A stretch of 62,652 nucleotides of DNA, counting the filler, from Hydrolagus affinis (Eukaryota), in the NCBI GenBank assembly GCA_012026655.1. It is 3 parts of 3 records of this genome, joined end to end, with 100 filler letters (N's around TTAATTAATTAA, not from the genome) between each part and the next. Parts side by side here need not be neighbours in the genome. Positions count along the whole stretch, not along the records: positions 38,396 to 62,652 come from JAAILG010010606.1; 2 more parts are not named here. The stretch is one strand, 5' to 3'. Below the pieces are notes generated by a model. It was not told where the DNA came from and did not search any database. It was given only the letters and a program-made list of their open reading frames with translations. The position numbers and the translations under genes were made by a program. Numbering within the stretch: the first letter of the stretch is position 1; every line of letters starts with the position of its first letter. Of this stretch, positions 38,396-62,652 are shown one piece after another.

Positions 38396-38923
38396 CGTGT
38401 GACCCGAGCTGGGAGGGGAGTGTTTGGGCGGGGGTGAAACACGAAGGGGAGGTCGAAAAATTCGGGGTGGAACAAAAGGCACGGTCAAAGAGGAAAGTCT
38501 TCAAACCGGCCTTGAAAGAGGAAAGGGAAGAAACGAGACGGAGGGATTGGGGGATAGAATTCCATAAGGTGGGAGCGGAGAAATTGAAGGCCCAGCCTCC
38601 GATGGTGGGACGGTTCGGGAGGGGGGCTTGGAGCAGGCCGAGTCCTGCTGAACGGAGGGTCTGGATGGGCTTGTAGGGGGAGAGTAGATTGACACCTCTA
38701 GCACTGCACAGGGATGTCAGCCTATCTTATGAGCTTCAAGTCATGAAGTGGGACTTGAACGCAAAACCTCCTGACTCAGAGGCAAGAGAGTGCTACCAAC
38801 TGAGTTAGGCTGAGCAAAGGTTAGGAGCATAATATATGAAGACTCCGCCATCAGTGCAAGCACACCAACAAGGGTGCAAGGAAACCTTACTGGTCTCTGT
38901 TTGTCACCCCTGTTTGAACCTAC

Positions 38924-41900
38924 CTGGAAGGTTAAGGAGAATTTCTCTTTGAATAGTCTCTTGCAAAGCTTTATGTTTGACTAAAAAGGAAAATGTTTTA
39001 TTGTAATCCAAAGCGGTCGGTTTTATCGTTAAGGAGGATGTCAGCTGGAAATATCCATTTTTATCCTTCTCAGGCCCTATATTTCCTACTCCTTCGGAGA
39101 TAATCGTTTCACCCTGCAACCAAGTGGTTACGATTTCTTTTGGAGAAAAATTAGTCACACAACATCTCATGATCAGAGGTTGTTCGTAGGTCGGGTCGAC
39201 TGGCTCTAACTCAATTTTTGAAATTTTCGGAATTCCTGTTTCAAGAAAAGCACAAGAAAATAAATTGTTTTACCTTAGACATAATCATTTCAGCTAGTTA
39301 TGAATGAAGAAATGTCACAGTAACCTTTTGCAAAACAGTACAACAAAATCAAATTATGTTTCATGTGTGGAGGACGTCCCAGGGAGTGGCTCGACAGTCA
39401 GGTATATGAACCCAAGGGAAATTAGGATCAGGAGAGCTGAACTGTGGGATGGAGTTCCAAAGGCTGAAGGCTCGATGGTGGACCGGGCCAGGCGGAGGAT
39501 GTTGAACCAAGGGAGTGGACAAGTCAATATGGGGTCACATAGGTGAAGGAGCAAGGCCATGGAGGGCTTTGAGGTTGAGGATAAGGATTTGGCACTCTGT
39601 CCTCTGGTGGATGGGTACCAATGGCCTCAGACGGGGTTAGTAACCGAATTGAAAATACCAAATCGAAAAGGAAAAAGAACATAAAATGAACTGGCTCAAC
39701 AATTTAAGTTGACCCTGCTGTAAAAAGCAATTTTCAAAGGACAATTGTTTCTCACATCATGTCCAAACTGTTTTCTTTGCAAATCCTATTCATCTACATT
39801 CTCAAACAACTACAATCCCATTTGGTGCTTATCCATAACTAGCATGGAGTGGGAGCTATAAACATAAGAGGTGGAAGCACAATATGGTCGGACGAACAGT
39901 ACATTATAGAAGCAATGTAACATATAGTTAATGGGTACCTCCGAGGTGCAGGGTGAGTATGGCTTTTGTAGGAGTGTGCGATGTTGGAAAATGTAGAACT
40001 TCAACCTTAATTTCAGCTCCTTGGTCTTCTGGGGTTAGAAACAATTTCCAAATGGACTCTCGGTAGTAAAGACCAGTCTGTAAATTACCCTGAGGCTCAA
40101 TGGATTTGATGTTGGCCTCATCCACTCGCTCATTATTTTTGAACCACAAGAAGACAACATTCTTTGGAAAGTACCTATGCACTCGGATTTTGATGGTTGC
40201 TTCTTTGCCTGGCTCTGGGAAGTGTGGCTCGGATTTTAGGTATTCTATTATTGGAGATGCCACTGTTTCAACACAGAAAGTAAAACAAAGTTAGCACGCA
40301 TATCGTCAAGTTGTCAAAAAAGTTGCTGAGAAATTAAAAATAGCAATAAACAATCATTGTACACACATTAAACCTAAAAAATAATTTGTTTAGGAGTTAC
40401 TGGACAGTGACTATCTTATTCGGTGGAATATAGGACGATAGAACACAGAAAGTTACAGAAGTGATGAAGGCTATTCAGCCCATTATGTCCATGCTGGCTC
40501 TTTTGAAGAGCAACCCTTCCAGTCCTAGGCTGACACGCTTCACATTTAAGCTGTAAATAGGTGACTATCATTGTACTCACCCATTGGAACGAGGTGACAC
40601 TCAGCTCTTGCACAATCTCCAGGAACATCAGAAAGCATTTCACAATATACGCGTTTTCCGAAATCTTCTCTAACTACAACAAATTCCAGCCGACTCTTAA
40701 AATAAAACAGGTCATCTTTCCCGCAGGTGGCTTCTGAGCCAGGGGTCATTTCAGCCAAGATTTCGTCATTCTTTCTCCAAACAATTGTAATGTTTCTTGG
40801 AAAAAAGGAATGCACTTTGCAGGTGGCGATCACGATTTCATCCGCAACAGGAGTATTTGGAAGCAGTATAATGTCGTCAAATTTCGGCAGAGCTGACAAC
40901 CAAATGAAATAAGAATAATATTAATAATACTTGCATTTGATAAAGTGCCTCATCTCATTGAGACATGTCAAAATGCTTCATATGAAATACTGTAGCTGCT
41001 TTGACTATTTTGTGGGTGAAACAGTAGCCAGTTTGCGCATAGCAATGTCTCACAAACAGCCATTGAGTGAATGATCAATTTTTATTTTGGGAGATTGTTG
41101 GCTTGAACACAAGGAGAAACTTCCTTCTCTATTTGAGTAGTGCCACAGGATCTTTAAATATCTACCCGAACAGGCAGGTAGGTCCACAGTTTAATATTTG
41201 ATCTAAAGGACTGCACCACTGACAAAACTTTAGCCCACAGTAATGTACTGTACTTGGGTGCCATTTTACAGTAAATCTGAGAAGCATTTTGACATGACCT
41301 CCTGATGTTAAAGGCACAATATTAAATATAAGAAATATGTATTATCAAATGCAACAATATTATCATTAATTTTAAACACAATGGTCAGAAATGCACAACA
41401 TACCTTTAACAGTTATGCTCACTTCTTTGGTTTTTGTTACATTTGTTGCTGGATGTGTTACTTTGCAAATGTACTCTGAATTGTTGTCTTCAATTATGGT
41501 TGGAATAAACATTACTATACTAGTGATACTGTAGGTGCCATCTTCATATCTCAACTCATTCAAATTGTGGACATATTTGGGCCTCTCTGTTTCATTTCCA
41601 AACATTTCCTCTCTCGGTTTCTCTGGTTCAACCTTCACAATTTCCACTTCCTTGTCGTTATGTCTTTTGTACCAGGAGACAGCCAGCGGCCTTGGCTTGA
41701 ATCCATTAATTGGACAGGTCAGAGCCAGAACTTCTTGGTGGATGACATGAGGCGGTATCACAATGTCATTCAACATCGGTGGGACTTTGAGTAAGAAAGA
41801 AAAATTAAAGTCGGACATACGGTGGCAAAAAAATAACTTCCACTTTGAAACACATTTGAAACTCAATTTGTTTTAAAACACTGGTTTAAAAACTTCTCTT

Positions 41901-44900
41901 CAATCTGCAGGTACACAAAATCAGAGGTTGTTGGACTTGGCTGACCTCTTACTCCATAACCTATGCACTGAGGCCAATCTTACTGGCTAAAGCGAAGTGG
42001 AATTTTCAGTTTCTGAGATGTTCCCAATGTGGATGACTCCCGATATTTTGTTATGTAAGGTCGCCTATCAGAGGTTCGATTGACAATGCTGAAATAATGA
42101 TATCACTGAACATCTTTTTTTGTAAATAAGTCTTATTAAAGCCATCAATTGTAACTACTCAAACAGAACACAAAAAAAAGACACTGGTCTCAGCAATAAC
42201 TGGTAACGGTTTGAATGCTTACATACCTCCTTCCACATTCAGGATGACACTTTCAGTAATGAAGCTTTTCGTGATATTATGACGTACTTGAAGCACGAGA
42301 ATAGCTTTGTCATCCTTAAAAATATCAAGCAGCAATTTAACATGACACTTGACACTGGAAGTCCCGTCACCGTGGCGTTCAATAGATGATGTTTGAATAA
42401 TGAAAGTCCCATCTGAGGTCTCATTGCCAGACAGAAGGTGACTGCTGACACCCTCTGTGGGCTCTATGCCTTTGTCAGACCATTTGTATATTGTGCTTCC
42501 ATTGGATTCCGCTCTTCTTTGCAGCAGCCATTCAATAGAAATACCATCTGGTTTGTATCCTGAAATCTCACAGTCCAAGAAAGCTTCTTGCTGATGTACA
42601 AAGCGAGGTGGCTTAATGATGTTTGTAACTTTTGGAGCAACTAAAATAACATTGAAAAGCACACTTGAATTTATTTGTTCTGAGGATGCCACATCAAAAA
42701 CACCTTACACTTCACACTAAACTTCTGCAAAGCTCTTTGAGATGTTTCAATGGTATGATAAAATGTTACATCAAATGTATTATTAATTACAAAATAAAAA
42801 TACATAATACAGTATGTAGATTAATAGACAATATGCAAATATATTTTATTGAAAAATATATAATTACAGTACACATACTACTGTACTTTAAGACAAAGAA
42901 TTTTTACCTTTTTTGAAGATTCTAAGGTAAGCATAAAATGCTCCACACAGGATCAGGGCACACAGCAAAACAGTAATGAACACACTCGTCACTATTCGTC
43001 CTACTGGTGTAACAATATCTTTCTCTGAGGAGAAGACACAAGAACCAACATGTTTAGCTCTGCAGTGAGTTACGAAAAGCAAAATATAACTTGCCTGGAA
43101 AATGGAAAACAATTCCAACTGAAGACCTGAAATTCCACCTGTCAGACCATCTTGTCTTAAAATTTACAGTCACGCAGAACTGTTAAATTCAGTCTTCCTT
43201 TTGAAGCAGGTTTTTTGATGGTTCTTAAAAGAAACCAGCTTCAGATTGAGACTGAAAAGAAGAAATCTGCACAATCCTGCGCAATCTCAAATCGTAAAAT
43301 AAAATGGTGTTACAGGCTAACACAAGGCAGAGTTGTATGCCTCCTGAAAAGTATGAAATTTTCTGTAATCACTTCACTCAGGGGTTAGTTCCTGTGCAGG
43401 AATGATTGGTAGTCAGCGTTGAACATGGGGGCACTTCCGTTTTGAGCCTAATCCTATACTCACGCGGCATCCAACAGAAGCACAATTTCCAGCTGGGAGG
43501 AGGAAGGCTATCAGACATAGATGAAAGACTTATCCCCTTCCCAGACTAAGACTAACTACATTGATCCAAAAAGACCTATCACTAGACTCACATACAGTAT
43601 TTTCAACTCCACCTTCGCTTTCTATCACAAACCAGTTTTTGGAGATTGATGAACGTTTCTGAAATAAAGACTGTACCTTTGACAGTCAGGTGAACTTCCT
43701 TGCTCATGGCACTAGCGAGTGTCCTATGGTTGACGAGGCATGTGTAGGTTTTACCATTGTCTGTAAGGTCTGGTCGGAGGGTCAGACGGCTGGATAGATT
43801 GAAAGTTCCATCTTCGTTTACCACTGAGGATTTTGTGCATTTGGACTTTAAAACCTGTTGTTTTCCATCCTCGTTGTGAACCCACTTCACATCAATTTTC
43901 GAAGGATAGTACCGGTGAATGTTGCACATGACTGACTTCTCTGTGCCATTTTCGATTATGATATTGGATTGATCTACAGTCACCTGTGGTGCAGCTGTGA
44001 AGATGAACAGAAATCTGTATCAAACATCTAAATATATTTAAAACCTTCCGATCTAAAAATTTTAATTTTGCTCATTTTCTCTGCAACTTTCTCTCTGTAC
44101 CTACTAGGTCTTTTGAATTGTGTAACCATGGCATCAATCAATGATGGAGCCTGGACTTCCACAACCCATTCACCCCATAGGTTATAAGACTGGAACATAG
44201 AGAGGACAGGACCATATCATCCAGTGATTTCTTTACAAGAGGCCAAATCAGAACACTTCTGGGATTACAAGAATTGCACTGCCTACAATAGATCTACTGG
44301 GATAAGAACTTATAACCAATTTGTACCATGATCCAACCACATAAATTCCAAGTAAAATGCATTCTCTCAAAAAGCTTATTCTTTGCCCTCACCCTCCTCA
44401 AATTCCTTTACATTACACCTTCACGCTACCCTCAGATCCCGCCTCAAAATCAGTCTTTTGACTGCTTTCTGTCAATATCCTCCCCTCTCCCCCCATTCCA
44501 CGTACCTCCTTCCCCCCACCCTCCATGTTGTCTGTAAAACGCTTAATTACATTATTTTAAATGATAAGAGCTGTGCAAGTATAAGGTCTCGTTTCCACTG
44601 TTGGTGTTTTTGAACACAGAATAGCAATAACATAACAAGATTGCAGGAATTAGAATGATACAGCATGTAAAAAGCATCATATCTTTTTTAAAAAAAAAAC
44701 TAGTCAGAATTTGTTCTCCCTTTTGAAAAATCCCATTGATCAAGCCCCAATAGCCACTTACCTGAAACAAACATTTCCACATTTCCCCTTCCACTGTCAG
44801 ATGTGATAAACACAATACATTCATACTGTCCTTCATCCTGGAATCCCACACTCAACAGCAACAGGGAAGCGATGCCCTTCTTCAATTTATCATCAGATAT

Positions 44901-46097
44901 CTTTGCTCCCTTTCGATGAGGTGTGTGTGTGCTGCTTCCAAATTTGTATACCAGTTTCCTAGCGACATCAGGAGGTTTCGAGAAGTACCATTCAACGCTA
45001 ACACTTGCAAGGTCAATGGTTCTCGATTCAAAGCCAGGTACCTGACATTTCAGTAAAACATCCTTATTTACCATGGTGTTCATAGCTCCTGAATCCATCA
45101 GCACAGTGAGGACATCTTCCACTGTGGTAATTTAACAGAACAGCGAAAGTTAGTGCGTAAATCATATCCATCACAAAAATAATGCTGTATACACCATAAA
45201 GAACGAAAAATCCACCCTTTAGATATTAAAATTTGTAATACCCACTTCTTAACCTGTTCTATACAGAGCAACCAAAATAAAATTAGTCAGACTTTCAAGG
45301 AATTTACCCATCACAAAACCTGCCAACAGGAGATGGGTGAAGGGGAAGAAATTTCCCCTCAGTCTGAATTTACAGTGCTTGAAATTCCACTTCATTTTTT
45401 GTGGGATTAAACAGCAACAGTTTACATTACAGAGTGGGAGCAAGTATCAAGCTGTTTCATACAAATAACTGGGTGGCCTGAGCTTCACAGAACATACTTT
45501 AAAATGAATTGACGGTATATTTTTGCGGGCAATTAAAAAAAAAGCCCGTTCTGTTCCTCTTATATTTAATATTTTCTACAGTTTGCGCTTATCAACACGT
45601 CCCATGAATAGGGAATACCATCCCGGTCCTTTTGTGAAGCGCTTTGAGACGTCTCAACGATGTGAAAGGCGCTATATTGACTCCCCATCCCTCAGCGAAT
45701 CGAGTACAAAACCTTCGTTGCCACCTCCAAAGCTCTCTATGGTCTTGCTCCCCCCACCCTACCTCTCCAAACACCCAATTCCTACCAACCTGTCCACTCC
45801 CTCAGTTAGGAGCAAGTAATCACAACAATAATACAAATACTGTAACATAAAAATAGCCTCAGTTTTCTTTCTTGTGAATTTCTTTTTGGGGCTTCAAATA
45901 AGGAAGCGGCACCATTTTGAGAACAGTCGCTGAGCAGAAACATCCTACTCGAGGCCCATAGAAATGATTTTCAAACTCGTTAACACTACACAGCGAGACT
46001 TAACTCCCCCCAACAAGCGCCTGTCCATTCGCTCTGTACCTGACAGCGGCAGACAGGTGAGCAGCAGCAGCGACACAGGCAGCAGATTCAGGTTCAT
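38924..46097 (-). CDS. NCR3LG1-like: B7-H6 (NCR3LG1)-like gene B: leader-V-C1-TM plus at least 5 post-TM C1-type Ig domains, 3' truncated by the gap
   Basis: Exons (all phase 1, GT-AG): L 46097-46040 (MNLNLLPVSLLLLTCLPLS), V 45121-44762, C1 43994-43677, TM 43024-42908 (IVTSVFITVLLCALILCGAFYAYLRIFKK), then Ig exons 42640-42227, 41784-41404, 40892-40581, 40262-39939 and 39235-38924. No stop codons. V (LKKGIASLLL...EGQYECIVFIT) and C1 (YYPSKIDVKW...NEDGTFNLSS...YTCLVNHRTL) resemble B7-H6 as I recall its sequence. Confidence 0.8.
42908..43024 (-). CDS. Gene B transmembrane exon
   Basis: Hydrophobic helix followed by RIFKK; ends at a phase-1 GTAAAA donor without a stop. Confidence 0.85.
43677..43994 (-). 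CDS. Gene B extracellular IgC1 exon
   Basis: VMCNIHRYYPSKIDVKW...DGTFNLSSRL...YTCLVNHRTL; 318 nt. Confidence 0.9.
44762..45121 (-). CDS. Gene B IgV exon
   Basis: VLLKCQV...VSVEWY...GIASLLLLSVGFQDEGQYECIVFITSD; 360 nt. Confidence 0.9.
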
Positions 46098-50451: not shown

Positions 50452-53400
50452 TCAACTGAGTTGCAGAGTGAAGTATTTGCTAACCGGCTCCATCTCAGTA
50501 ATAACATCACATTGTAATAGGATTCCATTATCCTCCTCGTTTGGTGTAAAAGTTAATGTGCTCTTGAAACCTCCATCTGGAAGGGGTATCTTTTGAATTA
50601 CATCGTCCTTTTCATAAGGGTATACACCCTTAAACCAAGTGATGTAAGAGTTCTTGATGTCCTGCCCTTGAATAGTGCAGGCCACAGTAACAAGTTGACC
50701 AGCTTTTGGATTTTCTGTTTCGCACACGATTTCCGAGACAAATTCTGCTTCCTCATCTGGGGGAAAAAAGTAAATACAAGCCTTTCGTCAGTCATGTCTG
50801 TTGTTGAGGTCAATCTGGAGCTCGTTCTTGAATGCGAACAGATTACTCAAGCATTGTGCCGTGGAGACCTTGTTCCTTACCATTACCATTACCTGGTTAC
50901 CATTCCTCTCGTCCATCACGAGTGAGCATTTCCCCGGTGTTTTCCCCGGGTGAAGTGTCAATGGTATTATTCTCTTGTGGAAAAAATAATCCCTTAGGAA
51001 TCTCTCAGATAAATACACCTCTGATGCCCAATAGTGGAATGGATATTTGTAGAATATTAGAGATCAAAAAGCCAGAAAATCTTCTGGGTGAGAGAGGAAG
51101 CCATGCAAGTGAAAGGGTTTGTAACATCATTGTAACTGAACATCTTAATTGAACAAGAATGAAGCTACCACACATCTCCTGCTAGGACGACCTTTCTCTT
51201 TTGGGTTTTGGCTTACAGGGTCGAGTCTTTGCCTACACCTCCAAATCTCAACAATGAGCAATAAAACCTGTTCAGCCATGTTCAATGCCATGAATTAACT
51301 GCAGACCTACACTGCTTTCTCTGTGCATCTCCTCAGGATCACTTAACCCACAAGGAGACCCTTCTTACCATGAGGACTATTTAAAATGGGCATTTTGCCA
51401 ATTCAGAGTAAGCTAAATCTTGGGTAGATTGGAATTTCTGGAAAGATTAGATCAAATGGGTCAATAGGCCTTCCTCATTTGAACTAATTTGTGAAAATAA
51501 TAGATTCAAGTTGACCGAAAAATCTAAATACAGAAACTTAGTGAAACATAAGAATACATTACCTTCACTGCCTGATTCACCACCTGGTGCAGGTTCATCA
51601 TTCTCATCATCACCACCTTAAATAGGAAACAAGAATATTATACTGGTTACATCATCAGTGAGATCATGCAAATAGTTACAATAAGTTAAACAGTAGTAGT
51701 TTCCAGGCTTAAAATTATTTAAATCACCAATGTGAAGTGTGGAGTAGATTATGCATGATTTCATAACAAACAAACCAGGATTCACAAGATTTCAACTTGG
51801 AAAGCCTGAACCAACTCAAACCATTTTAGAATGGGCTCCCTCGAGTCAGCTAACTGGGTGTAGGATTACCAGAAGGCAATCCCTTTTAGATTTCTTATGA
51901 AATCCTATTAAGTAATGTGGCATAATTGACCCCAGCATTTCCAACAAACTTCTCTATGAGGACAGTAGAGTGGATAGTGGGGTGGCAGCAACTAGGGAGC
52001 AATGCATCTGGATGATAGAGGGGGAAATAAATATCAGGCAGAGATCTCACATCTGGGAATTCCTGCTAGCATAACATAAAAGAGTGTGGGAGAAAAGGTA
52101 AGAGAATAGTATTATGCAGATAGCATAGTCAGAGATCCCATGCAGGTACAATGGGCCACATGGGCACCTTCCATGCTGTAAATCGTTATGGTTCCATGAT
52201 TTTTGTGGGGTTAGCCAGGGTTAGTCACATCTAGATCTCACTTTTCTAAAAAGAGAATCTCTCCTTGGAGACACACATCCTGCTTAACCAATTCCAGAAG
52301 GAATATATTACGTCCAGATTGGCAAAAGCGAAGGCTTGTGGATCCCAGAGTGTGCTTAGGTTACTTCAATAGTTCTCAACCAGCTCTTGATAGCTTGCCA
52401 TCAAAAACACTATCTGACAAGCTTCCCAATACATGTCCAGCTAAAACCACCTTATGCATTAGGGCTTTGGCTTACAGGTTAAAAAGGAGATGAGTGGCAA
52501 GAATCCCTATCCCACATTGGGAGAACATGGATCAAAAGATAGAATTTAGCAGTATTAAAGTAACTGGAGGGTTTTGTAGTGAATTGGGATGGAATAGTTG
52601 ACATTTACCTTTGATACACAAAACAAAATCCTTCTCCTGAATCTCCTTAGTTTCCTCGTGAGTTATCTCACACCTGAAATCACATTCCAGATCGTCTAAA
52701 GTGGGCTGAAACTCTATCTTCGAAGTGGAAAAAAAGAGACCATTTTCAGCCACTTCTGGGAGGCTATTGACCACAGTTCCTGGGTAAGGCTTCCATTTCT
52801 TGAACCATTTCACAATGATACCGCTAGGTACGTAGTTGCTCAATGAAATGCTCAGTGATACCATTTGGTTAATTTGCGGTGACACAGGATCAGATTTAAT
52901 ATTGGAGAGTTGGGGAGAGAAAGCTGAGGAAACAGAAAAATGTGCACAACCATTAGTCAAGAAAGCAAGTATCATAGAATCATAGAATTTTTCAGTAGAA
53001 AAGGAGGCCATTCGGTCCATCGAGTCTGTGCCTGCTCTTTGAAAAGAGCTACTCACAATTCAATCGCACTCCCTGGCTCTCTCCCCATTACCCTGCAAAC
53101 ATGTCCTCCCCAAATAATCATCCACTTCTCTCTTAAAAGAAGAGTTATTGAACAACACAGTATTCCTTGTGCTATTTTATGGCTGTGAATATAAGTGTAC
53201 TCCAATTTGTTGAAGTGCCACAAATCTGTTGAAAATAGTTCCACGCATCTACAGTAAGGGATAGACATGTTCTATGTTGCAGAACCATACCTGGAAGGCT
53301 GAGACAGATGCTTTTCACGATTGGTTGGGTCAATCTGGCATGTTCCACATGGAATGAAAAATCCTTTTCGAAATCCCTGGCATTTGGCACAAGTTTCAGG

Positions 53401-56400
53401 ATGGAAGAACACCGAAAGCATCCACCTTCATCTGGTTCAGGACCCTGGTTACTGATCCCTTTGCTGATCTTAGTTTTCTGCTGAAACCAAGATGTTGTGA
53501 TCCCCTGAGTCGTGAAGTTGTTCACATTGCACGTGAGAACAAGTTCCTTTCCATACACAGGCTCGGACGGGTCAAGTATGATGTTGGAAACTGCTGGGAT
53601 ACCTGTTTAAAAATTGCACAGATGGTAGATTGTCGATAAACTTTAGATCTGCAATTTTATGTAGTCTTAGTCTTTGGGACAATTTTGCTTGAAAGTTAAG
53701 ATCACTCAGAATTGTGGAAATGTTTTTGATTTAGACTACTTGTCCTTTTAAAGACGCACTTTTTTAAAACAACAAGTTTCCAATTTAAGACTGAGTTTAA
53801 GACACTATACAATTCGGTGTGATGTTCAATTTCAAAACAACAACAACAAAATTATATTTATAGAGCGACTTTCACATCGGGAGGCTATGACCAGGAATTT
53901 CAAGACACCTTCTTTCTTTTTAAAAGATCTAACAGCAGAATAAAATGAGCATTCAGCGATCTTATTCAAGACTAATTAACCTTGGATTTAGTATAGCACC
54001 TTTTCACATTGTTGAAATAGCTCAAAGGCTTCATAGGATCTAATGTTAAGTAGTAAGTGTGTATTTATAAACTAATGTGGCAATCCATTTGTGCACAACA
54101 ATGTCCCACATTTTGCCCAAAAAGTGAACGATTAAATTTTATCTACCAGATTGTTGATCAGGACATTGGAAAAATTCCCTTACATTTTTCAATAATGCCA
54201 CAGTATCTTTAATGTCTATCCGACAGGTTTAACGTCTCACCTGAAGGACTTCTAGCAATGTACTACTTCCCCAAGCACTTCAGAGAAGAAACATCTTAAA
54301 ATATGAGCAAAGTCCCAAAATGGGACTTGAACCCACAACCCCTTTGATTGAGCTAGCAAGGATACTACCAACTGAGCTGACTGGAAAGATACACATTTAG
54401 AAAAATAGTCAGTAGAGCCATATTGCTATAAATTATGTTTCTGAATTCCTCAAAATATTTGGATCATTTTTGTTCAGAAACACACTCTGTAGAGTCACGC
54501 AACCAAATCAATGATAAGACTTGCACGAAACACTGCAAGCTGGTCCACCGATTAAATATTATTTGTTACAGTTAAAGTTCTACAATCATAAATTTACGTA
54601 TGTAACTAAAATAATATTTACCTTTTAAGATCAACGTCCGGCAGACTTTTCGTGGTATATTGGAGGTTTCCGCATGAAGAATTTCCATTGCGTATTCTGT
54701 GCCATGATCCAGTTCTTTTGGAATGAACGTCCACTTGGACTCGCGATAAAACAGGCCGGTGATCAGATCCTGTTTAGTATCTTCACTTTCGAATTTTGTT
54801 TCCATTTTCTGAAAAGCCCGAATCCAGGAAATTTCATTTCCCTCGGGATAAAAGTCATATGCCTTGCAGGACAGAGTAACGGATTTCCCTATCTCCGGGA
54901 ACGGTGGATCAATTTCAATCTCCATCAGTTTGGGAAAAGATACTTTATTTGGAACAAGAGAAAATTAATCAATTGCACATTGATCAACAAAATAACAACT
55001 GGATCACTTTACCGGACAGTAAATAACACACAAATCTTCAATAGTTTAAAAGTTACAAATTAATAATAAATAATAATCCTAGTGCCTTATCACATCATTG
55101 AGATGTCTCAAATCGCTTCACAATTTATGCTACAGTGTCTCTTAAGGTTTAAGATTAGTCTTGACTGCTCTGAAGACCAGTAACAAATACTGTATAGAGT
55201 TTTTTCCAGTAACTTTTCCACATTGCCTGTTTCCCTTCCAAGTCTCCAATCTTTCTCCCTCGGCTTCTATTTTATCAATATCATTAAAATAATTTGTTTC
55301 TCTTAACTTATCCTTCTTGGTGATGCTTACTGCTAAATATGCAATTCTGGATCCTCATGATATTGAAATCAAGACTCTTGACACCATCTCATCTCCCACA
55401 CTAATTCATTAATTCCCAGGTATAATTCCTTACCTTCCTTACTCTTTCTTTTTCTTCTGTCGTCTAAATATTACTCATCCCTATCTTCTCCAATCCAGTT
55501 TTTGAAATCCAAACTTTAGTGCCAACTAACAATAATAAATCCTTGGATTGGATACTTTGCCTTTCACATTGGGAGGATGCCTCAAAACACTTCAAAGGAT
55601 TTACTGATATAGGTAGCAACCGCCAGAGGTGTTGTACTTTGGGTGAGACACAGACGGACTGTTAAACAGACTGTCTATTCAGATGGATATTAAAGATCCC
55701 ATGGCACTATTCGTAAAGAGAAGTGAGTTTTTCCCATTTTCCTGACTAACGAGCTTAAGTTGGTCATTCACTTTTAGGTTTTTGTAGGGCATTCCTGTGC
55801 ACAAATTGGCTGCCTTCTTTTGCCTACAAATACAGTCGCTAAACCTCACAGTAAATCACATGAAGCTCCTTGAGGTATCCTGATAATGTGATAAGGCTCT
55901 ATAGCGGATGCAAGAATTAGTATCTTCTGAATTCATACCAAAACAAACATTCCTCCCTATGTGAAGTTCGACTGATTCATAATTGTATAAAAAATTGAAT
56001 GACAGATATATTACAAGTAGGCTTGGTGCTTTTCCCTCTTTATAATAATAATAATCCTTGCATTTGATAAAACGCTTATCACATTTTCTAGTCGTCTCAA
56101 AGCGCTTTGCAGAATATACTGCAAAGTGAATTGACTATATACAAGTGGGCAAAACACGACAGCCAATTGTGCACAGCAGTGTCCCACAAACAGTCGTGGA
56201 TTGAAATGACCAATTTATTACAGGGGGGTTTTCTGAAGGCATTATTTTAAGGCATTATTTTTCTTTCTCCATAGATGCTGCCTGTCCTGCTGAGTTTTCC
56301 CAGCTCTCTGTTTTAGTTTCAGATTTCCAGCATCTGCAGTATTTTGTTTTGTTTATAATTATATATATATGTAGGTAGCAAAACACTTTTTTTTTCATTT

Positions 56401-59400
56401 TATACCAGATTGATTCGTATATTTGTGATTTTTTGTGCATATGATAAATTCATAATGCAAAAAATAACATTTTATAGCAAATATTAAAATATTTGAATAC
56501 CTCACTCTGCCATTTAAAACGTTTCATAGAAGACACAAAATGATGATCAACATCAACCCTCAATGTACAAAATTGATACTCACCCAAACGGCTGAGGACC
56601 CAATGTGTCTCCACTGGCTCTATTAGGCTTTCGTGGTGCACCTTACATATGTACTTGCTGTCAACATCCTTTTTTGTGACTACAGTCTTCATGCTAGTTA
56701 CAAAATGGAACAACTTATCCTTTCCTATCGTAGGCTCACTATCTTGTGATTCTAATGGTATCTCCCCATTGTTCTTAAACCACTCAGCTTTGATTGTTTG
56801 AGGGTAAAATGAATTGACCTGGCAGCTTAATTTCAAAGGCTCTTCTGCCACAGGTGTTTTGGGGTCTATCTGAATCTCCTGCAGTTTGGGTGTGCCTGAA
56901 AGTAGAATAATATGAATGCAGCATTAAAACAGAAGGACATCATGGACATTTTGAAATTAAAACAAACAGGATACTTTTTTTTCGCTTGTTTATTTTAAGG
57001 CAAGTAATTGTTTTCTTTGATATTTTCGGTAATATCCCAATTACCACCCCACTCCCACCCATCCACACATGTCCACAGCACCCTCCAGTATAACTAAAGC
57101 AAGTGCAGGTTTGCAAGAATCATGGCTTGGGGTACACCAGATTCCTCGAGCCAGCTAAATCTCTGAGCATGACATTGGGAACAATGACAAGCTTCCTTGC
57201 TTGTGCAGCTCAGATCAGCCTGCACATTTGGCCTTTGGCTTGCAAGGTTAACAGAATCACTGCCTCCAGAACCTCTTAACTAGTGCAATAATAAAGTATT
57301 TCACTACTATAGTACAGAGCTGTTTCATTAATTTTTAACGGTCATGTATTTTTTAAAATAAACCTACCTTTAATAAACAGCCTAGCTGTTTTCTCTTCAA
57401 GTTTGGCAGTGGGTTCATGATGCACCTCACAGATATAATTCATTCCCGCATCGTCTTGAATATCTGGTATAACATTCAATACACTGATGACGGTATACGT
57501 CTTATCCTCATATTGCATTTCACTGATGTAGTGGTTGAACTTATTCATCTTCCTGCAGGCAACTTCGAGGCATCTACTTGTGTCTTTGTCGAGGTAAGCA
57601 ATTTCTTTCTTGTTGCCATTATTCTCATGTTGGTACCAAGTGATGCTCAATGGTCTTGGCTTAAATCCATTGATGGGACAGACCAAGGCCACCAACTCAT
57701 TGTGAATGATACGAGGTGGCAGCACAATGTCCGAAATCTTTGGTGGAACTTTGAGAAAGAAAAATAGCAGAACAGTGCATCAGAAAAAGGACAAGATCCT
57801 AGTTGCTGATGGGAATTTTCTCTGAATAAGTCACAATTAAAAGGTAGCAATGCCCTTCCTAAATAAATGCAAAACCTTTTGAGATGTCTTACTTTTATGT
57901 ACGCAAAGCATTATGTGTATAATATTAATAATACTTGTATTTTATATAGAATTACATCACCTCTCAGAGCGCTTCACAGAGTATGCTGTAAAGTGGATTA
58001 ACTATAATTGGTGGGCAAAATTTTCACTCAGCCAGGAGTGAAATAATAACAATAATAATCCTTACATTTGATATAGCAGTTTACATGTTAGTAGGACATC
58101 CCAAAGTGCAATGACTGTGTATTTTATGGGCAAATGCAACAGCCTATTACCAAAGTTTGGTGGGGTGGGGGGATTGTTGGCCAGGACATTGGGAGAAACT
58201 CTTTTCTCTTTGCAAATAATGCTGTGCACTCTTTGATATCTACCCGAACAGGCAGTCACAGCCTTGGATTTTAATGTCTCACACAAAGGTGAGCACCTCG
58301 AGCAATTCAGCACACCCAAGTACTTTATAGGAAAGTCATCTTAGATTATATGAGTTCCAAGTCTTGGCACGGGGCTTGAACCCATGACCTCCCGATGAGC
58401 GTGCCACCAACGGAGATAGGAATTCAACTCATGATTATGGTAACTTTTCCAGATTATCAGCAAGGCATGTCCATGTTAAGAAGTAAAATCTTGTGAAGGA
58501 TTTCAAACATTTCAACGACAAATGTAAAAATTATTATTTTATCATGCGGAATTGCATAAAAAGTGTTAATTCATTCAGTTACCTCCAACGACCTCCAGAA
58601 TTATCTTCTTCTCCACTGGAGTCCAAAAACATTGATGCTCCACTTGAAAGGTTAATTCCACCTTGTTATCACTGTACATGTCGGGAAACATTTTAACGCA
58701 ACAATTCACACTCGAATTCCCGTCTTTCAAACTAATAAGCAAGAAATTAGGAATGAAGGATTTATCACAACAGTCCTTTCCATTTGAGAGAAGATTCGCT
58801 TCCTCATCAGAATTTTGAGGCATAGTGTTGTTCCATTGATAAATTATCTTCTTATCCTGTTTGCTTCTTTTGACATATAAAGAGATGGAAATTTTAACTG
58901 GTCTAAAACTAGTAACTTGACAACTTATTAAGGCTTCTTCTTGGTGTCTAATAGTGACAGGTGTGCTGATTTCGGTGATTTTTGGAGAAACTGAGGAAAG
59001 AAAACACGAGTTAAAACCGGGTATTCTAATGTTTGCCTGTGTTTGCTCTGTGTGCACTGCCACCCAAGCACTGATTCCAGTAAGAACATAGAATAGGAGA
59101 TACAGTATCATACATGCACATAAGAACAACTTTTAGCCCCTCTGCCCCCATTCTCTGGGACTCTGTCTCACATTCTTCACTCCCTACCTGTCTACCTGTC
59201 TTCTCAACTGTGCTTTTACATAGATTTACGAAGGATCTCTGTCTGAACTAGTCCATGTTGGTGTTTACTCTGCACAAGTCTCCATGCACTCTGTACTCTT
59301 TCCCACAAACTTCTATTCACTTCTCCCCCAAATGAGAATCCAGCTTCCTCTTACGTTCAAGCACCTCAACATGTTAAACCAATTTCAGACAGCAACCCAA

Positions 59401-61921
59401 TGTGAAATTCGACATATTAAATGTAAGTGATATTCTTGTACTTATTCATTTCAAAATGCACTTAAGAGGAAACTCGATGCATACATGAGAAAAAAAAGGG
59501 AGGTAAAAATAGCAGATTAGATAAAAGATCACATTTAACAGATCCCTAACACAATGTAAACTGAAAGCCTATAACCAAGCAACACTTTACCTTTTTGAAA
59601 ATGCATTGTATAAATGAAAAATAGTCCAGCAAATGCCAACATGCTGAAGATCAACGTTCCAATTATAGCCCCGGCAATCGCTCCTCCTGATGTTCTCTCT
59701 GGTTCTGAAACATGATAAATAACAGGGTACAGTCTTCGAGGCAAAAGGCAACATCACAAGCAACATGGTGTCTGATGCATGTGGAATTTCACCACAGGTA
59801 TGGCTCTACAGTTCCAACAAATCTGCCGGAAAACCAAGCACAACTTTCAGGATTCGAGAGCCAATATTGTTTTCTTTGAAACTCAAATTGAGAATCACAA
59901 TCCAAAAGCTGAAATTAATATTTGACTGAGACCTTGCATATAAAAGTGCAAACTGATCTTGAAATCTTCCTCTACGAGTCACAAAAAACTCTAATTTTGT
60001 TTCTCTACTTATGAAATAGAATCATAAACATTTACACATCAGTTTACAAATTTACACATTAAACTTTTGAGTCTGACTAGCTCTCAGAGCAAATCATTTG
60101 TTTGATCCCACTGCCCCGTTGTTTCTCCACACCCTTTCAAGACATTTTTCTTTCACATACAGTACCCGTCTACTTTCTTCTGGAAAAGCACAATTAACTC
60201 TGCCTCTGATAGAACCATTCCATGGCCAAACAGCTCAGAGTGTGTGAAAATAATTCTTAGAATCTCCTTTCACTCTTCTTGTAGCTATCTGATATCTATT
60301 TACCTTTCACGGTGAGTTTGGCCTCTGTTATCAAGGGGCTACTAAGCGTTCTGTGCTTAACCTCACACTGGTAGATGGTCCCATCGGCATCCATTGTTGG
60401 TTCAATCTGTATCTGGCTGGACACATTGAACGTTCCATCTTTGTTAGGCACTGGAGCACCTGTGCAGATATCATTCACAACTGTCTCTGTCTTTCCTGAT
60501 GACACCTTGAGCCACTTGAGACTGTATTCCTGAGGATAAAATCTGGCAATGTCGCACCTCACAGAGCCCTCTGAATTGCTCACCACAGTAAAGTGTTTTG
60601 TAGACAAGCTGACTGTTGGTTTAACTGTAAAAAAAGAAGAACATTAACTGCAAAACCAGGATGGAGATGATAGAGGGACATTAAGTAACAACAACAAGCA
60701 AAATTACATTTATAGAGCGCCTTTCACTTTGGGAGGACGTGCCAAGGCACTGAACAGTCAGGTCAGGACCTGAGCAAGGGGGGGACGCAGGGGAGGGAGA
60801 GATTTGGGAGGGGAGGGAGAGAGTTGGGAGGAGGGTCTTGAGACTGGCCTTGAAGGAGGCGAGTGAGGAATCAGGCGAAGGGACTGTGGGGTGGAGTTCC
60901 AGAGTGTGGGGGCAGAGGGGCTGAAAGCCAGTCCACCAATGGTAGGGCAAGTTGTGCGGGGGACATGGATCAGACCAGAGCCTGCTGAATGGAGGGGGCA
61001 GGCAGGATCTTAGGGAGTCGAAGGGGCCAAGGCTGTGAATGGCCTTGAAAACGGATCTTGAATTCAATCCTCTGGGGGATGGGGAGCCAATGAAGCCGGG
61101 TGAGGCTGGGAGTGATGTAGTCACAGAGCTTGGTGCGGGAGACGACATGAGCTGCAGAGATCTGCATGATCCGCAGCTTGTGAAGGAAAGAGCCAGGAAG
61201 GCCAACGAGGAGGGCATTTCCTTAGTCGAGCCTTGATATGATGCATACATGGACGAGGGTTTCAGCAGCCTGAGGGGTGAGGCAGTGGCGGAGTCTGGCA
61301 ATGTAATGGGGATGGTGGAAGGCTGTTCTGGTCATGGCTCATTTGTGCGGTAAGATGGACAGTTCAGGGTCAAAACTAGACACCCAGATTCCTAACTGGC
61401 TTCAAGGGATCTGATAAAATGGTAGGGAAATAAAAGTTGCAGATCAGCCATGGTCTAATAAATGGTGAAGTTGTCTGGTCAGGCTGAACAATTTACTCCT
61501 GTTCCTATCTTCAAATGCTCTTTACATCTCAACACATATCCCAATGTACAGCTTGTTGAATCTCTTTTACCTGACACCAAAATTGATCCAGACATTTCTC
61601 CTTTATCTGGAGTAACAAATATAATACACGTGTACAGTCCCTCGTGTTCAAATTGTACTTTAGAAAGTTCAAGGGTTGCATCTCCTAGTTTTAAGAGTTC
61701 GTCTGACATCGTTGTTCCTGCTCTCTTTGGAAAATGTTTTTGTCCATTGTACACATAGATTTCTTCCGGCATTCCATCCTTTCGGGTGAACATCCACTGT
61801 ACGCCCACCTGTTCAAGGTTAAGTGTACCTGGTACATGGTTAGTTAGTTTGCACTTGAGGTTAACTGTTGCGTCTAATAGCACTTCCATTGGACCTTTAA
61901 ACATGGTTATGTCTAAGGTAC
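50452..61921 (-). CDS. NCR3LG1-like: B7-H6 (NCR3LG1)-like gene A: V-C1-TM plus 7 post-TM Ig domains and an acidic linker; leader exon not found in the window; about 1064 aa without leader
   Basis: Exons (phase 1, GT-AG): V 61921-61571, C1 60624-60304, TM 59704-59591 (GAIAGAIIGTLIFSMLAFAGLFFIYTMHFQK), Ig a 58990-58583, b 57748-57368, c 56895-56584, d 54942-54622, e 53602-53291, f 52923-52609, linker 51616-51563, terminal Ig g 50756-50452 (stop TGA). Continuous ORF when spliced. V: LKLGDATLEL...EGLYTCIIFVTPDK; C1: RFYPQEYSLKW...GAPVPNKDGTFNVSS...GTIYQCEVKHRTL. Confidence 0.82.
59591..59704 (-). CDS. Gene A transmembrane exon
   Basis: EPERTSGGAIAGAIIGTLIFSMLAFAGLFFIYTMHFQK with a phase-1 donor and no stop. 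Confidence 0.85.
60304..60624 (-). CDS. Gene A extracellular IgC1 exon
   Basis: VRCDIARFYP...W...DGTFNVSS...YQCEVKH; 321 nt. Confidence 0.9.
60690..61400 (-). mobile_element. L2 LINE 3' fragment in the gene A V-C1 intron; another at about 62290-62652 (+)
   Basis: HVVSRTKLCDYITPSLTRLHWLPIPQRIEFKI remnant plus the shared L2 tail. Confidence 0.75.
61571..61921 (-). CDS. Gene A IgV exon
   Basis: VNLKCKL...VGVQW...GDATLELSKVQFEHEGLYTCIIFVTP; 351 nt. Confidence 0.9.
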
Positions 61922-62652
61922 CTGCAGATGACAGAAAACAAAATTATACACTTTATACAGTGCCCTTCACTTAGAATAACATCTAAGCCCTTCAAGCTTC
62001 TAACTCTTACCACAAACAATATTAAGGCACTTATGAAGGGTGTTTGTTTCGGAATTCTTAGTGTTACATTGAAACATCCATCACTTTATGTTGGTCAACT
62101 AAAGTTGTTCTGAGTGATTTATTATTTAAAAACACACTTTCTTACATCAAGAGGAAATCACATTACTTGACAAGGGAATTGCAACAATTGATGTGATAAA
62201 TACACATTATCACCCCCGATAGTGTTATTCTTAACACATGTGCCATCAAATACAACTACTGTAGATTGTAAACAATGTGTAACCTAATGGTGGATTTTAA
62301 AAGCACAGACTATTGCTGAGCTAAATTCAAACAGACTTTGCTACAAGATTTCTCCTCCTTGCTACAATGCCGGTCTCCCCAGCTCCACCATTCACAAAAT
62401 CCAACTGATTCAAAACTCCGCAGCCACATTCTCCCCTTTGCCTGCCTCCGCACTCCCATGACCCCAGCACTGGCCAGACTCCACTCATGTCCTGTTACAG
62501 AATGGATCGATTTCAAGATCCCTACTCTTACCTCTAAATCTCTTCATACCCAGCACCCGCCTACCACTCTGACCTTCTGCATATCCCTTATCCCCTCTCC
62601 TCCACCTTCTGTGGCCATGCTTTCTGTCCATACTTCCTGAAAACCTGGAACT

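Follow-up and report, generated by a model that had tools for sequence, protein, structure and literature searches.

Tandem genes for B7-H6-like membrane proteins with a putative cytosolic array of seven immunoglobulin domains in the chimaera Hydrolagus affinis

The window analysed here is a 62,652-nucleotide stretch of Hydrolagus affinis DNA (GCA_012026655.1) made up of three joined parts, and our analysis concerns the last of these, the piece at positions 38396-62652 (JAAILG010010606.1). The content of this piece is best explained as a tandem pair of genes of ancient divergence, A and B, each encoding a B7-H6-like type I membrane protein and each lying on the minus strand (Table 1). Stop-to-stop reading frames combined with Pfam searches returned a run of V-set, C1-set, hydrophobic and further C1-set segments for each gene (50452-61943 for gene A; 38904-45122 for gene B), and the exon ends of gene A were set by tblastn with the Callorhinchus milii orthologue P0001 and by inspection of the boundary bases.

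Gene A encodes a V domain, a C1 domain, a transmembrane (TM) helix and seven further immunoglobulin (Ig) domains, designated Ig-a to Ig-g, with an acidic linker before the last. Its introns are GT-AG throughout, and every exon begins and finishes in phase 1. The spliced model is 1063 amino acids long with no internal stops, and 806 of these lie downstream of the TM helix, which is the sole hydrophobic segment on the Kyte-Doolittle scale. The protein ends with the last strand of Ig-g, lacking a second TM helix or a hydrophobic tail, and this C-terminal shape is common to C. milii P0001, coelacanth P0003 and reedfish P0009. The original prediction for this locus, made from the DNA sequence, had described V, C1 and TM exons followed by seven phase-1 Ig exons and a short acidic exon, with about 800 residues past the helix, no internal stop and no second helix; all of these elements were found where it had placed them. 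It had also taken gene A to be truncated by the window and without a leader, which agrees with our search of the remaining 730 bases to the piece edge (61922-62652), where no convincing leader was detected. A weak candidate inside the piece was rejected on account of its poor donor, and the leader exon of gene A lies beyond the piece edge.

The C. milii orthologue of gene A is LOC103174895, with 61-82% identity per exon (V exon, 61%; ectodomain C1 exon, 76%). The linkers on both sides of the helix are short, with approximately 8 residues between C1 and the helix and approximately 5 between the helix flank and Ig-a. The acidic exon corresponds to an acidic stretch of P0001 that is disordered in the AlphaFold2 model. 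It is rich in D, E and S and is followed by the D-E-E-A-E that opens Ig-g, resembling a casein-kinase-type acidic cluster; the linker is long in the chimaera proteins and merely a short link before the last domain in coelacanth P0003 and reedfish P0009.

Gene B follows the exon order of gene A as far as Ig-e, where the piece stops. The original prediction had given this paralog a leader and an order identical to that of gene A; we found a candidate leader, and the order holds over the part of the gene that is present. The gene B protein is 36% identical to that of gene A and 45-50% identical to proteins of Pristis and Heterodontus (BLASTP). As gene B groups with ray and shark proteins and not with gene A, the split between the two genes predates the holocephalan-elasmobranch split, and so does the layout that they share.

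Several features of the gene A introns were also recorded. If the donor of the TM exon is left unused, the frame reads through 20 more codons before a stop (59535-59590). Three introns carry very high-copy interspersed repeats (56000-56330, 57840-58340 and 60680-61000), over which the summed contig depth reached 10^4-10^6 in all four runs used below vs under 150 on exons, and the repeat copy in the V-C1 intron overlaps a G+C-rich, G-skewed block (GC 0.52). An Rfam scan of the piece returned no matches.

Table 1. Exons of genes A and B and segments of the RNA-library contig aligned to them (window positions)
Feature	Position	Strand	Evidence or remark
Gene A V-set exon, B7-H6-like V	61571..61921	-	Pfam V-set E 1e-10; splice sites, frame
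Gene A ectodomain C1-set exon	60304..60624	-	Pfam C1-set E 2e-11
Gene A TM exon	59591..59704	-	114 nt; phase 1 both ends; Kyte-Doolittle 2.4 over 19 aa
Gene A Ig-a exon, long C1-like	58583..58990	-	Family profile E 1e-19; contig positions 117-524
Gene A Ig-b exon, GFKPRPL motif	57368..57748	-	Pfam C1-set E 2e-9
Gene A Ig-c exon	56584..56895	-	Pfam C1-set E 2e-12
Gene A Ig-d exon	54622..54942	-	Pfam C1-set E 3e-6
Gene A Ig-e exon	53291..53602	-	Pfam C1-set E 6e-10
Gene A Ig-f exon	52609..52923	-	Pfam C1-set E 9e-7
Gene A acidic linker exon, 18 codons, D/E/S rich	51563..51616	-	Acidic-window scan, splice sites
Gene A Ig-g exon and stop codon	50452..50756	-	Family profile E 6e-14
Gene B overall	38924..45395	-	ORFs, splice sites, spliced model, BLASTP; cut at piece edge
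Gene B candidate leader	45395-45308	-	ATG, phase-1 GT donor
Gene B V	45121-44762	-
Gene B C1	43994-43677	-
Gene B TM	43024-42908	-
Gene B Ig-a	42640-42227	-
Gene B Ig-b	41784-41404	-
Gene B Ig-c	40892-40581	-
Gene B Ig-d	40262-39939	-
Gene B Ig-e	39235-38924	-
X5 contig 1-116, TM exon	59706-59591	-
X5 contig 117-524, Ig-a	58990-58583	-
X5 contig 525-877, Ig-b	57748-57396	-
X5 contig 904-1217, Ig-c	56897-56584	-

The original prediction had described the gene A product as resembling a ligand of NKp30, and human B7-H6 proved to be its best solved relative by both sequence and fold. A phmmer search of the V-C1 ectodomain against PDB returned human B7-H6 as the best match (E 1e-24), followed by CD276 (2e-18). 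Foldseek superposition of the modelled ectodomain on the B7-H6 crystal structures 6yjp and 3pv6 gave TM-scores of 0.88-0.91 with root-mean-square deviations of 2.2-2.8 A, the best superposition on B7-H6 having a TM-score of 0.91 and a deviation of 2.2 A. Leaders in the orthologues, the candidate leader of gene B and the single TM helix together give the type I layout of B7-H6. The canonical Cys pair of the ectodomain C1 domain is 100% conserved, and this domain holds the family's only conserved N-glycan site. A third Cys in the same domain (approximately 60464-60466, within D-I-C-T-G) is present in 20 of 21 members and could form an interchain or an extra loop bond. No NKp30-like gene was found in the piece 38396-62652.

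The exons past the helix encode recognizable Ig domains. With the Pfam C1-set model (PF07654), the ectodomain C1 and Ig-b to Ig-f scored 28-48 bits against a cut-off of 21; Ig-a scored weakly (15 bits) and Ig-g gave no match, while a profile built from the family detected all seven post-TM domains, including these two. Structure prediction and remote searches were carried out on the C. milii orthologue P0001, which stood in for the spliced window protein. AlphaFold2, run with an alignment of 26 family members, returned a mean predicted local distance difference test (pLDDT) score of 82 and a confidently predicted beta sandwich for each of the seven post-TM domains. Block means were mostly 80-93 over the seven domains, with 77-88 in Ig-a outside one loop and 81-93 in Ig-g; the low-confidence parts were loops 360-377 (the loop in Ig-a) and 496-507, the TM flank and the acidic linker (989-1009). 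By sequence and fold, the post-TM array is nearest to the constant domains of IgG, IgA, IgE, the B-cell receptor, SIRP-alpha and shark UrIg2.

RNA data tie these exons to the TM exon. We placed four runs on window positions 56000-61000. One record, X5 record 11, which is a contig of 3441 bases from a relative's RNA library, matched the minus strand in four pieces (Table 1), joining 59591 straight to 58990; its first two letters sit on the acceptor AG upstream of the TM exon start at 59704. The differences between this contig and the window reproduce residues of C. milii P0001, and on this sequence evidence the contig is a transcript of the P0001 gene or of a very close one. The TM-to-Ig-a junction is real. 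The original prediction would have fallen if no transcript ever linked the TM exon with the Ig exons, and this contig contradicts that case. Poly(A) reads from the same species as the window (X2) match the window at the listed places at which the contig differs, and they cover exons alone, in a single direction, leaving the intron past the TM exon nearly bare (depth under 1). The X2 evidence is one of depth, as the high-copy intronic repeats masked junction reads, including any from a C1-to-Ig-a skip. With bins summed by hand, depth was approximately 17x on the TM exon vs 7-10x on C1, Ig-a, Ig-b and Ig-c, and since the TM exon is covered at least as deeply as its neighbours, it is not preferentially skipped in that sample. 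Finally, the C. milii UniRef entry V9K7L7 contains the leader, V, C1, TM and whole Ig array, and the RefSeq models likewise show the full layout. At several residues V9K7L7 departs from the genome-derived models, a sign that it has an independent source, presumably the elephant-shark cDNA set to which we take V9K-series entries to belong.

The same architecture recurs across a wide range of vertebrates. When Ig-b was queried with phmmer against 1.8 billion representatives, 228 proteins were returned, and in most of the best matches the matching segment falls near residue 430 of proteins of approximately 800-1200 residues, as a shared layout would lead one to expect; the weaker matches include ordinary Ig heavy chains. 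In 95 homologues, a single mid-chain TM helix is followed by 380-1800 residues. Members of the family occur in Callorhinchus, many sharks, rays, a skate, the coelacanth, the African lungfish, the bichir and the reedfish and, among amphibians, in frogs including Xenopus tropicalis, a newt and a caecilian; no amniote or teleost was present among the 38 best-scoring matches with names checked. These proteins are named 'uncharacterized', 'hypothetical' or 'Ig-like domain-containing', or carry the automatic name NCR3LG1/NR3L1, the NCR3LG1 naming applying to some amphibian and bichir members. The RefSeq isoforms of several amphibian and bichir members (P0008/P0164, P0162/P0163, P0188/P0012, P0189/P0185 and P0028/P0199) differ by cassette exons for the TM helix, V, C1 or single Ig domains of the tail, and the all-phase-1 exon structure fits such whole-cassette differences.

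Position by position, the post-TM domains are conserved about as well as V and C1 (32-40% vs 37-39% identity) and retain the invariant core Trp, Pro and Cys. Ig-b is the most conserved domain, with a mean of 40% identity to non-holocephalan members. Over a shorter evolutionary distance the picture for Ig-c is different: in the comparison with the relative's contig (56615-56820), 34 codons differ, 25 by nonsynonymous and 9 by synonymous changes spread evenly over codon positions, which looks like near-neutral or diversifying evolution between the two holocephalans although the domain is deeply conserved.

The side of the membrane on which the array lies was assessed from signatures drawn from approximately 128 family members, with Cys and sequon columns taken from a 21-member alignment. 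The first signature is charge. Across the 95 mid-TM homologues, the mean net charge is -0.7 in the 12 residues before the helix and +2.8 in the 12 after it, and Ig-a opens directly past a K/R-rich stop-transfer flank in the family. The gene A helix is likewise preceded by acidic and followed by basic residues. The original prediction had drawn attention to a TM segment ending in basic residues, and this description needs a small correction: while the family average is clearly positive-inside, the flank of gene A itself (HFQK) is weak.

The second signature is glycosylation potential. In the mid-TM proteins, N-x-S/T sequons are enriched before the helix (345 observed vs 206 expected, 1.67x) and close to chance after it (526 vs 492, 1.07x); the gene A tail holds 3 vs 5.1 expected. 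The aligned members share one conserved N-glycan site in the ectodomain and none in the post-TM region. The third and fourth signatures concern Cys. Sporadic Cys residues occur at 0.17 per 100 residues before the helix vs 1.50 after it, an approximately nine-fold difference (Fisher p 3e-18), and the total in the tail ranges from 16 to 34 across orthologues. The canonical Cys pair is complete in 92% of pre-TM C1 domains vs 46% of 782 post-TM domains, and in 18 of 18 control domains from matches with a C-terminal TM helix, which are true ectodomains. In gene A, Ig-a, Ig-b, Ig-c and Ig-g hold both canonical Cys. The second is missing from Ig-d and Ig-e, and the first from Ig-f, in 21/21 aligned members. 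The lone Cys that survives in Ig-d, Ig-e and Ig-f is approximately 95% conserved, and hence Cys conservation by itself is no proof of a disulfide in this family.

Taken together, the charge, sequon, sporadic-Cys and Cys-pair signatures favour a reducing, glycan-free compartment for the array. The intracellular placement of the post-TM Ig domains put forward by the original prediction thereby gains support from four independent sequence signatures. We consider that the main product is probably a type I membrane protein with a B7-H6-like V-C1 portion outside the cell and a seven-domain, C1-derived rod in the cytosol. A cleaved leader would deliver V and C1 to the outside, where NKp30-type receptors would read them, and the single hydrophobic helix would halt transfer. 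The chain past the helix would stay cytosolic, with its seven C1-derived Ig domains and the acidic linker before the last forming a rod about seven domains long. Such an array would be adapted to a reducing, glycan-free compartment in which free Cys come and go and sequons stay at chance, and three of its domains would have lost a canonical Cys before the cartilaginous and bony fish lineages split.

A number of observations weigh against a cytosolic array. For Ig-b and Ig-c, the canonical Cys pair is 90-100% conserved (Ig-c 100%), as would be expected of real disulfides, and the Ig-a pair is mostly lost jointly, with 6 of the 10 members short of a Cys having neither. The gene B tail (42227-42640 and 38924-41784) contains 9 sequons vs 3.1 expected; this excess is one outlier among approximately 130 proteins, not alarming though unexplained. 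Fast change of the kind recorded for Ig-c is more usual in surface immune proteins than in a cytosolic scaffold; rapid evolution is a feature of the family, as it frequently is of immune ligands. NCBI-predicted isoforms lack exactly the TM exon in Bombina (isoform X2, 34 aa) and Microcaecilia (isoform X3, 37 aa). Finally, the X5 contig begins at the TM exon, and no single read-derived record spans V to Ig-g.

Several of these points bear on the possibility that the Ig array acts outside the cell. Since all exons are in phase 1, skipping of the TM cassette leaves the reading frame intact, and the entire chain would then be secreted as a soluble, antibody-like or decoy protein of leader, V, C1 and seven Ig domains, with the TM-containing transcript being minor or a by-product. 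The predicted TM-less isoforms, the conserved Cys pairs of Ig-b and Ig-c and the sequon excess of gene B would all suit such a protein, as would the likeness of the post-TM domains to Fc, IgE, SIRP-alpha and UrIg2 constant domains, all of which are extracellular. Cartilaginous fish are, moreover, known to possess non-rearranging proteins with a V and multiple C1 domains in UrIg and UrIg2 (PMC12227049). However, the holocephalan TM exon is covered as deeply as its neighbours and the sole assembled transcripts include it, and its hydrophobicity and basic flank are retained in all lineages. The TM-less models themselves have both canonical Cys in 47% of domains and 1.8 extra Cys per domain, which would be very unusual in a secreted protein. 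The 800 residues past the helix have 0 conserved N-glycan sites. The predicted isoforms also skip V, C1 or single tail Ig exons, and the predicted TM skipping may be generic exon skipping. We therefore regard a predominantly secreted product as unlikely, although a secreted second product, with an extracellular array, is possible.

Sporadic Cys and fast evolution would also be explained if the post-TM Ig exons were translated but functionless, forming a decaying tail on a working V-C1-TM ligand. The near-neutral ratio of nonsynonymous to synonymous changes in Ig-c between the two holocephalans, the loss of canonical Cys from three domains and the chance level of sequons all point in this direction. 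Against this, all seven exons have remained open in lineages ranging from chimaera to frogs, and two paralogs that are older than the holocephalan-elasmobranch split keep them open with their splice sites intact. The domains are orthologous by position, are conserved like V and C1, keep their core Trp, Pro and Cys and fold confidently in AlphaFold2, and we consider decay improbable. An artefactual model uniting a V-C1-TM gene that ends after its helix with an unrelated run of Ig exons is the least credible alternative by far: although readthrough of the TM exon to its stop 20 codons past the donor could give a short-tailed form if polyadenylated there, the X5 contig has the TM/Ig-a join exactly where it was predicted, Ig-a lies just some 600 bases from the TM exon and lacks its own leader, start codon and V exon, and C. 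milii V9K7L7, from a source other than genome models, has the same join. Separate-gene and pseudo-exon readings were both rejected on the RNA contig and conservation.

Returning to a B7-H6-like ligand with a cytosolic rod, the original prediction had proposed that the array might act as a scaffold or signalling platform; the function that we prefer for the rod would be to couple the cell interior to ligand display. C1 domains typically pair face to face, and the rod may therefore dimerise or cluster the ligand via C1-C1 faces; alternatively, it may dock a cytosolic partner. The short linkers on both sides of the helix would make the molecule nearly continuous through the membrane, favouring cross-membrane coupling. 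Acidic clusters act as sorting signals in cytoplasmic tails, and the D/E/S-rich linker before Ig-g could, by analogy, be of this type. More tentatively, and with somewhat greater doubt than belief, we suggest that the B7-H6 of the jawed-vertebrate ancestor might have borne a cytosolic seven-C1 rod that reported or controlled the display of this natural killer (NK) cell ligand, a rod that cartilaginous fishes, bichirs, lobe-finned fishes and amphibians would have retained for more than 400 million years and that the mammalian line would have exchanged for an unrelated tail.

Antibodies, T-cell receptors and MHC molecules all have the C1-set as their characteristic fold, and to our knowledge C1-set domains are regarded as markers of adaptive immunity that occur strictly outside cells or in lumenal compartments. 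If the cytosolic placement is true, seven C1-set domains behind a membrane anchor would break this extracellular-only rule and provide the first known case of a C1-set array working intracellularly. The NKp30/B7-H6 axis, the ligand side of which is poorly understood, would gain a large structured cytosolic module with testable partners, one that could allow inside-out control in the manner of butyrophilins, and the non-Ig tail of human B7-H6 would appear to be a late replacement. The family lends itself to testing, with full-length models available for Xenopus, sharks and the elephant shark. The searchable literature, which did not extend to two key B7H6 papers, yielded no description of Ig domains behind the TM helix of B7-H6 relatives, and no papers in it name these locus identifiers. 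The gene models have long been public, none with a functional name; we rate the protein as a B7-H6 family member with an unprecedented tail, for which an earlier description is possible.

Among known systems, UrIg and UrIg2 also combine a non-rearranging V domain with a long run of single-exon C1 domains, the number of which is plastic between species, and UrIg2 has its TM helix at the C-terminal end, all of its C domains outside the cell and a V domain of the antigen-receptor VJ type (PMC12227049). The post-TM array studied here fits the UrIg2 crystal structure 9dmx and Ig heavy chains about equally well. In contrast to UrIg2, the V domain is B7-H6-like and the TM helix lies between the first and second C domains, with none past the last, and an identity with UrIg or UrIg2 was rejected on these two grounds.

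Cytosolic rods of tandem Ig-fold domains without disulfides are familiar from titin, obscurin, myosin-binding protein C and the filamin repeats. Those arrays are of the I-set or filamin type and belong to soluble cytoskeletal proteins, whereas the domains described here match the Pfam C1-set and are carried by a membrane-spanning immune ligand.

Human B7-H6 (NCR3LG1) likewise has a leader, a B7-type V domain, a C1-set domain and a single TM helix in type I orientation. Its tail is non-Ig, roughly 190 residues long, and contains gag-like sequence and short signalling motifs, whereas the tail of the gene A product consists of seven C1-derived Ig domains and an acidic linker. We regard the non-Ig tail as a trait that sets the mammalian member apart from its fish and amphibian counterparts, and not as a ground for excluding the latter from the B7-H6 family.

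The nearest functional analogy is with the butyrophilins, in which a B7-like V-C ectodomain and one TM helix are joined to a large folded cytosolic B30.2/SPRY domain, and in which the cytosolic domain of BTN3A1 senses an intracellular ligand and alters the display of the ectodomain to lymphocytes. Pfam returned Ig-type families alone for P0001, its relatives and the window exons, with B30.2/SPRY absent. Both systems would thus present a B7-family ligand with a structured cytosolic module, which is B30.2/SPRY in the butyrophilins and Ig in the proteins described here, the ectodomain of the latter being nearer to B7-H6 and CD276.

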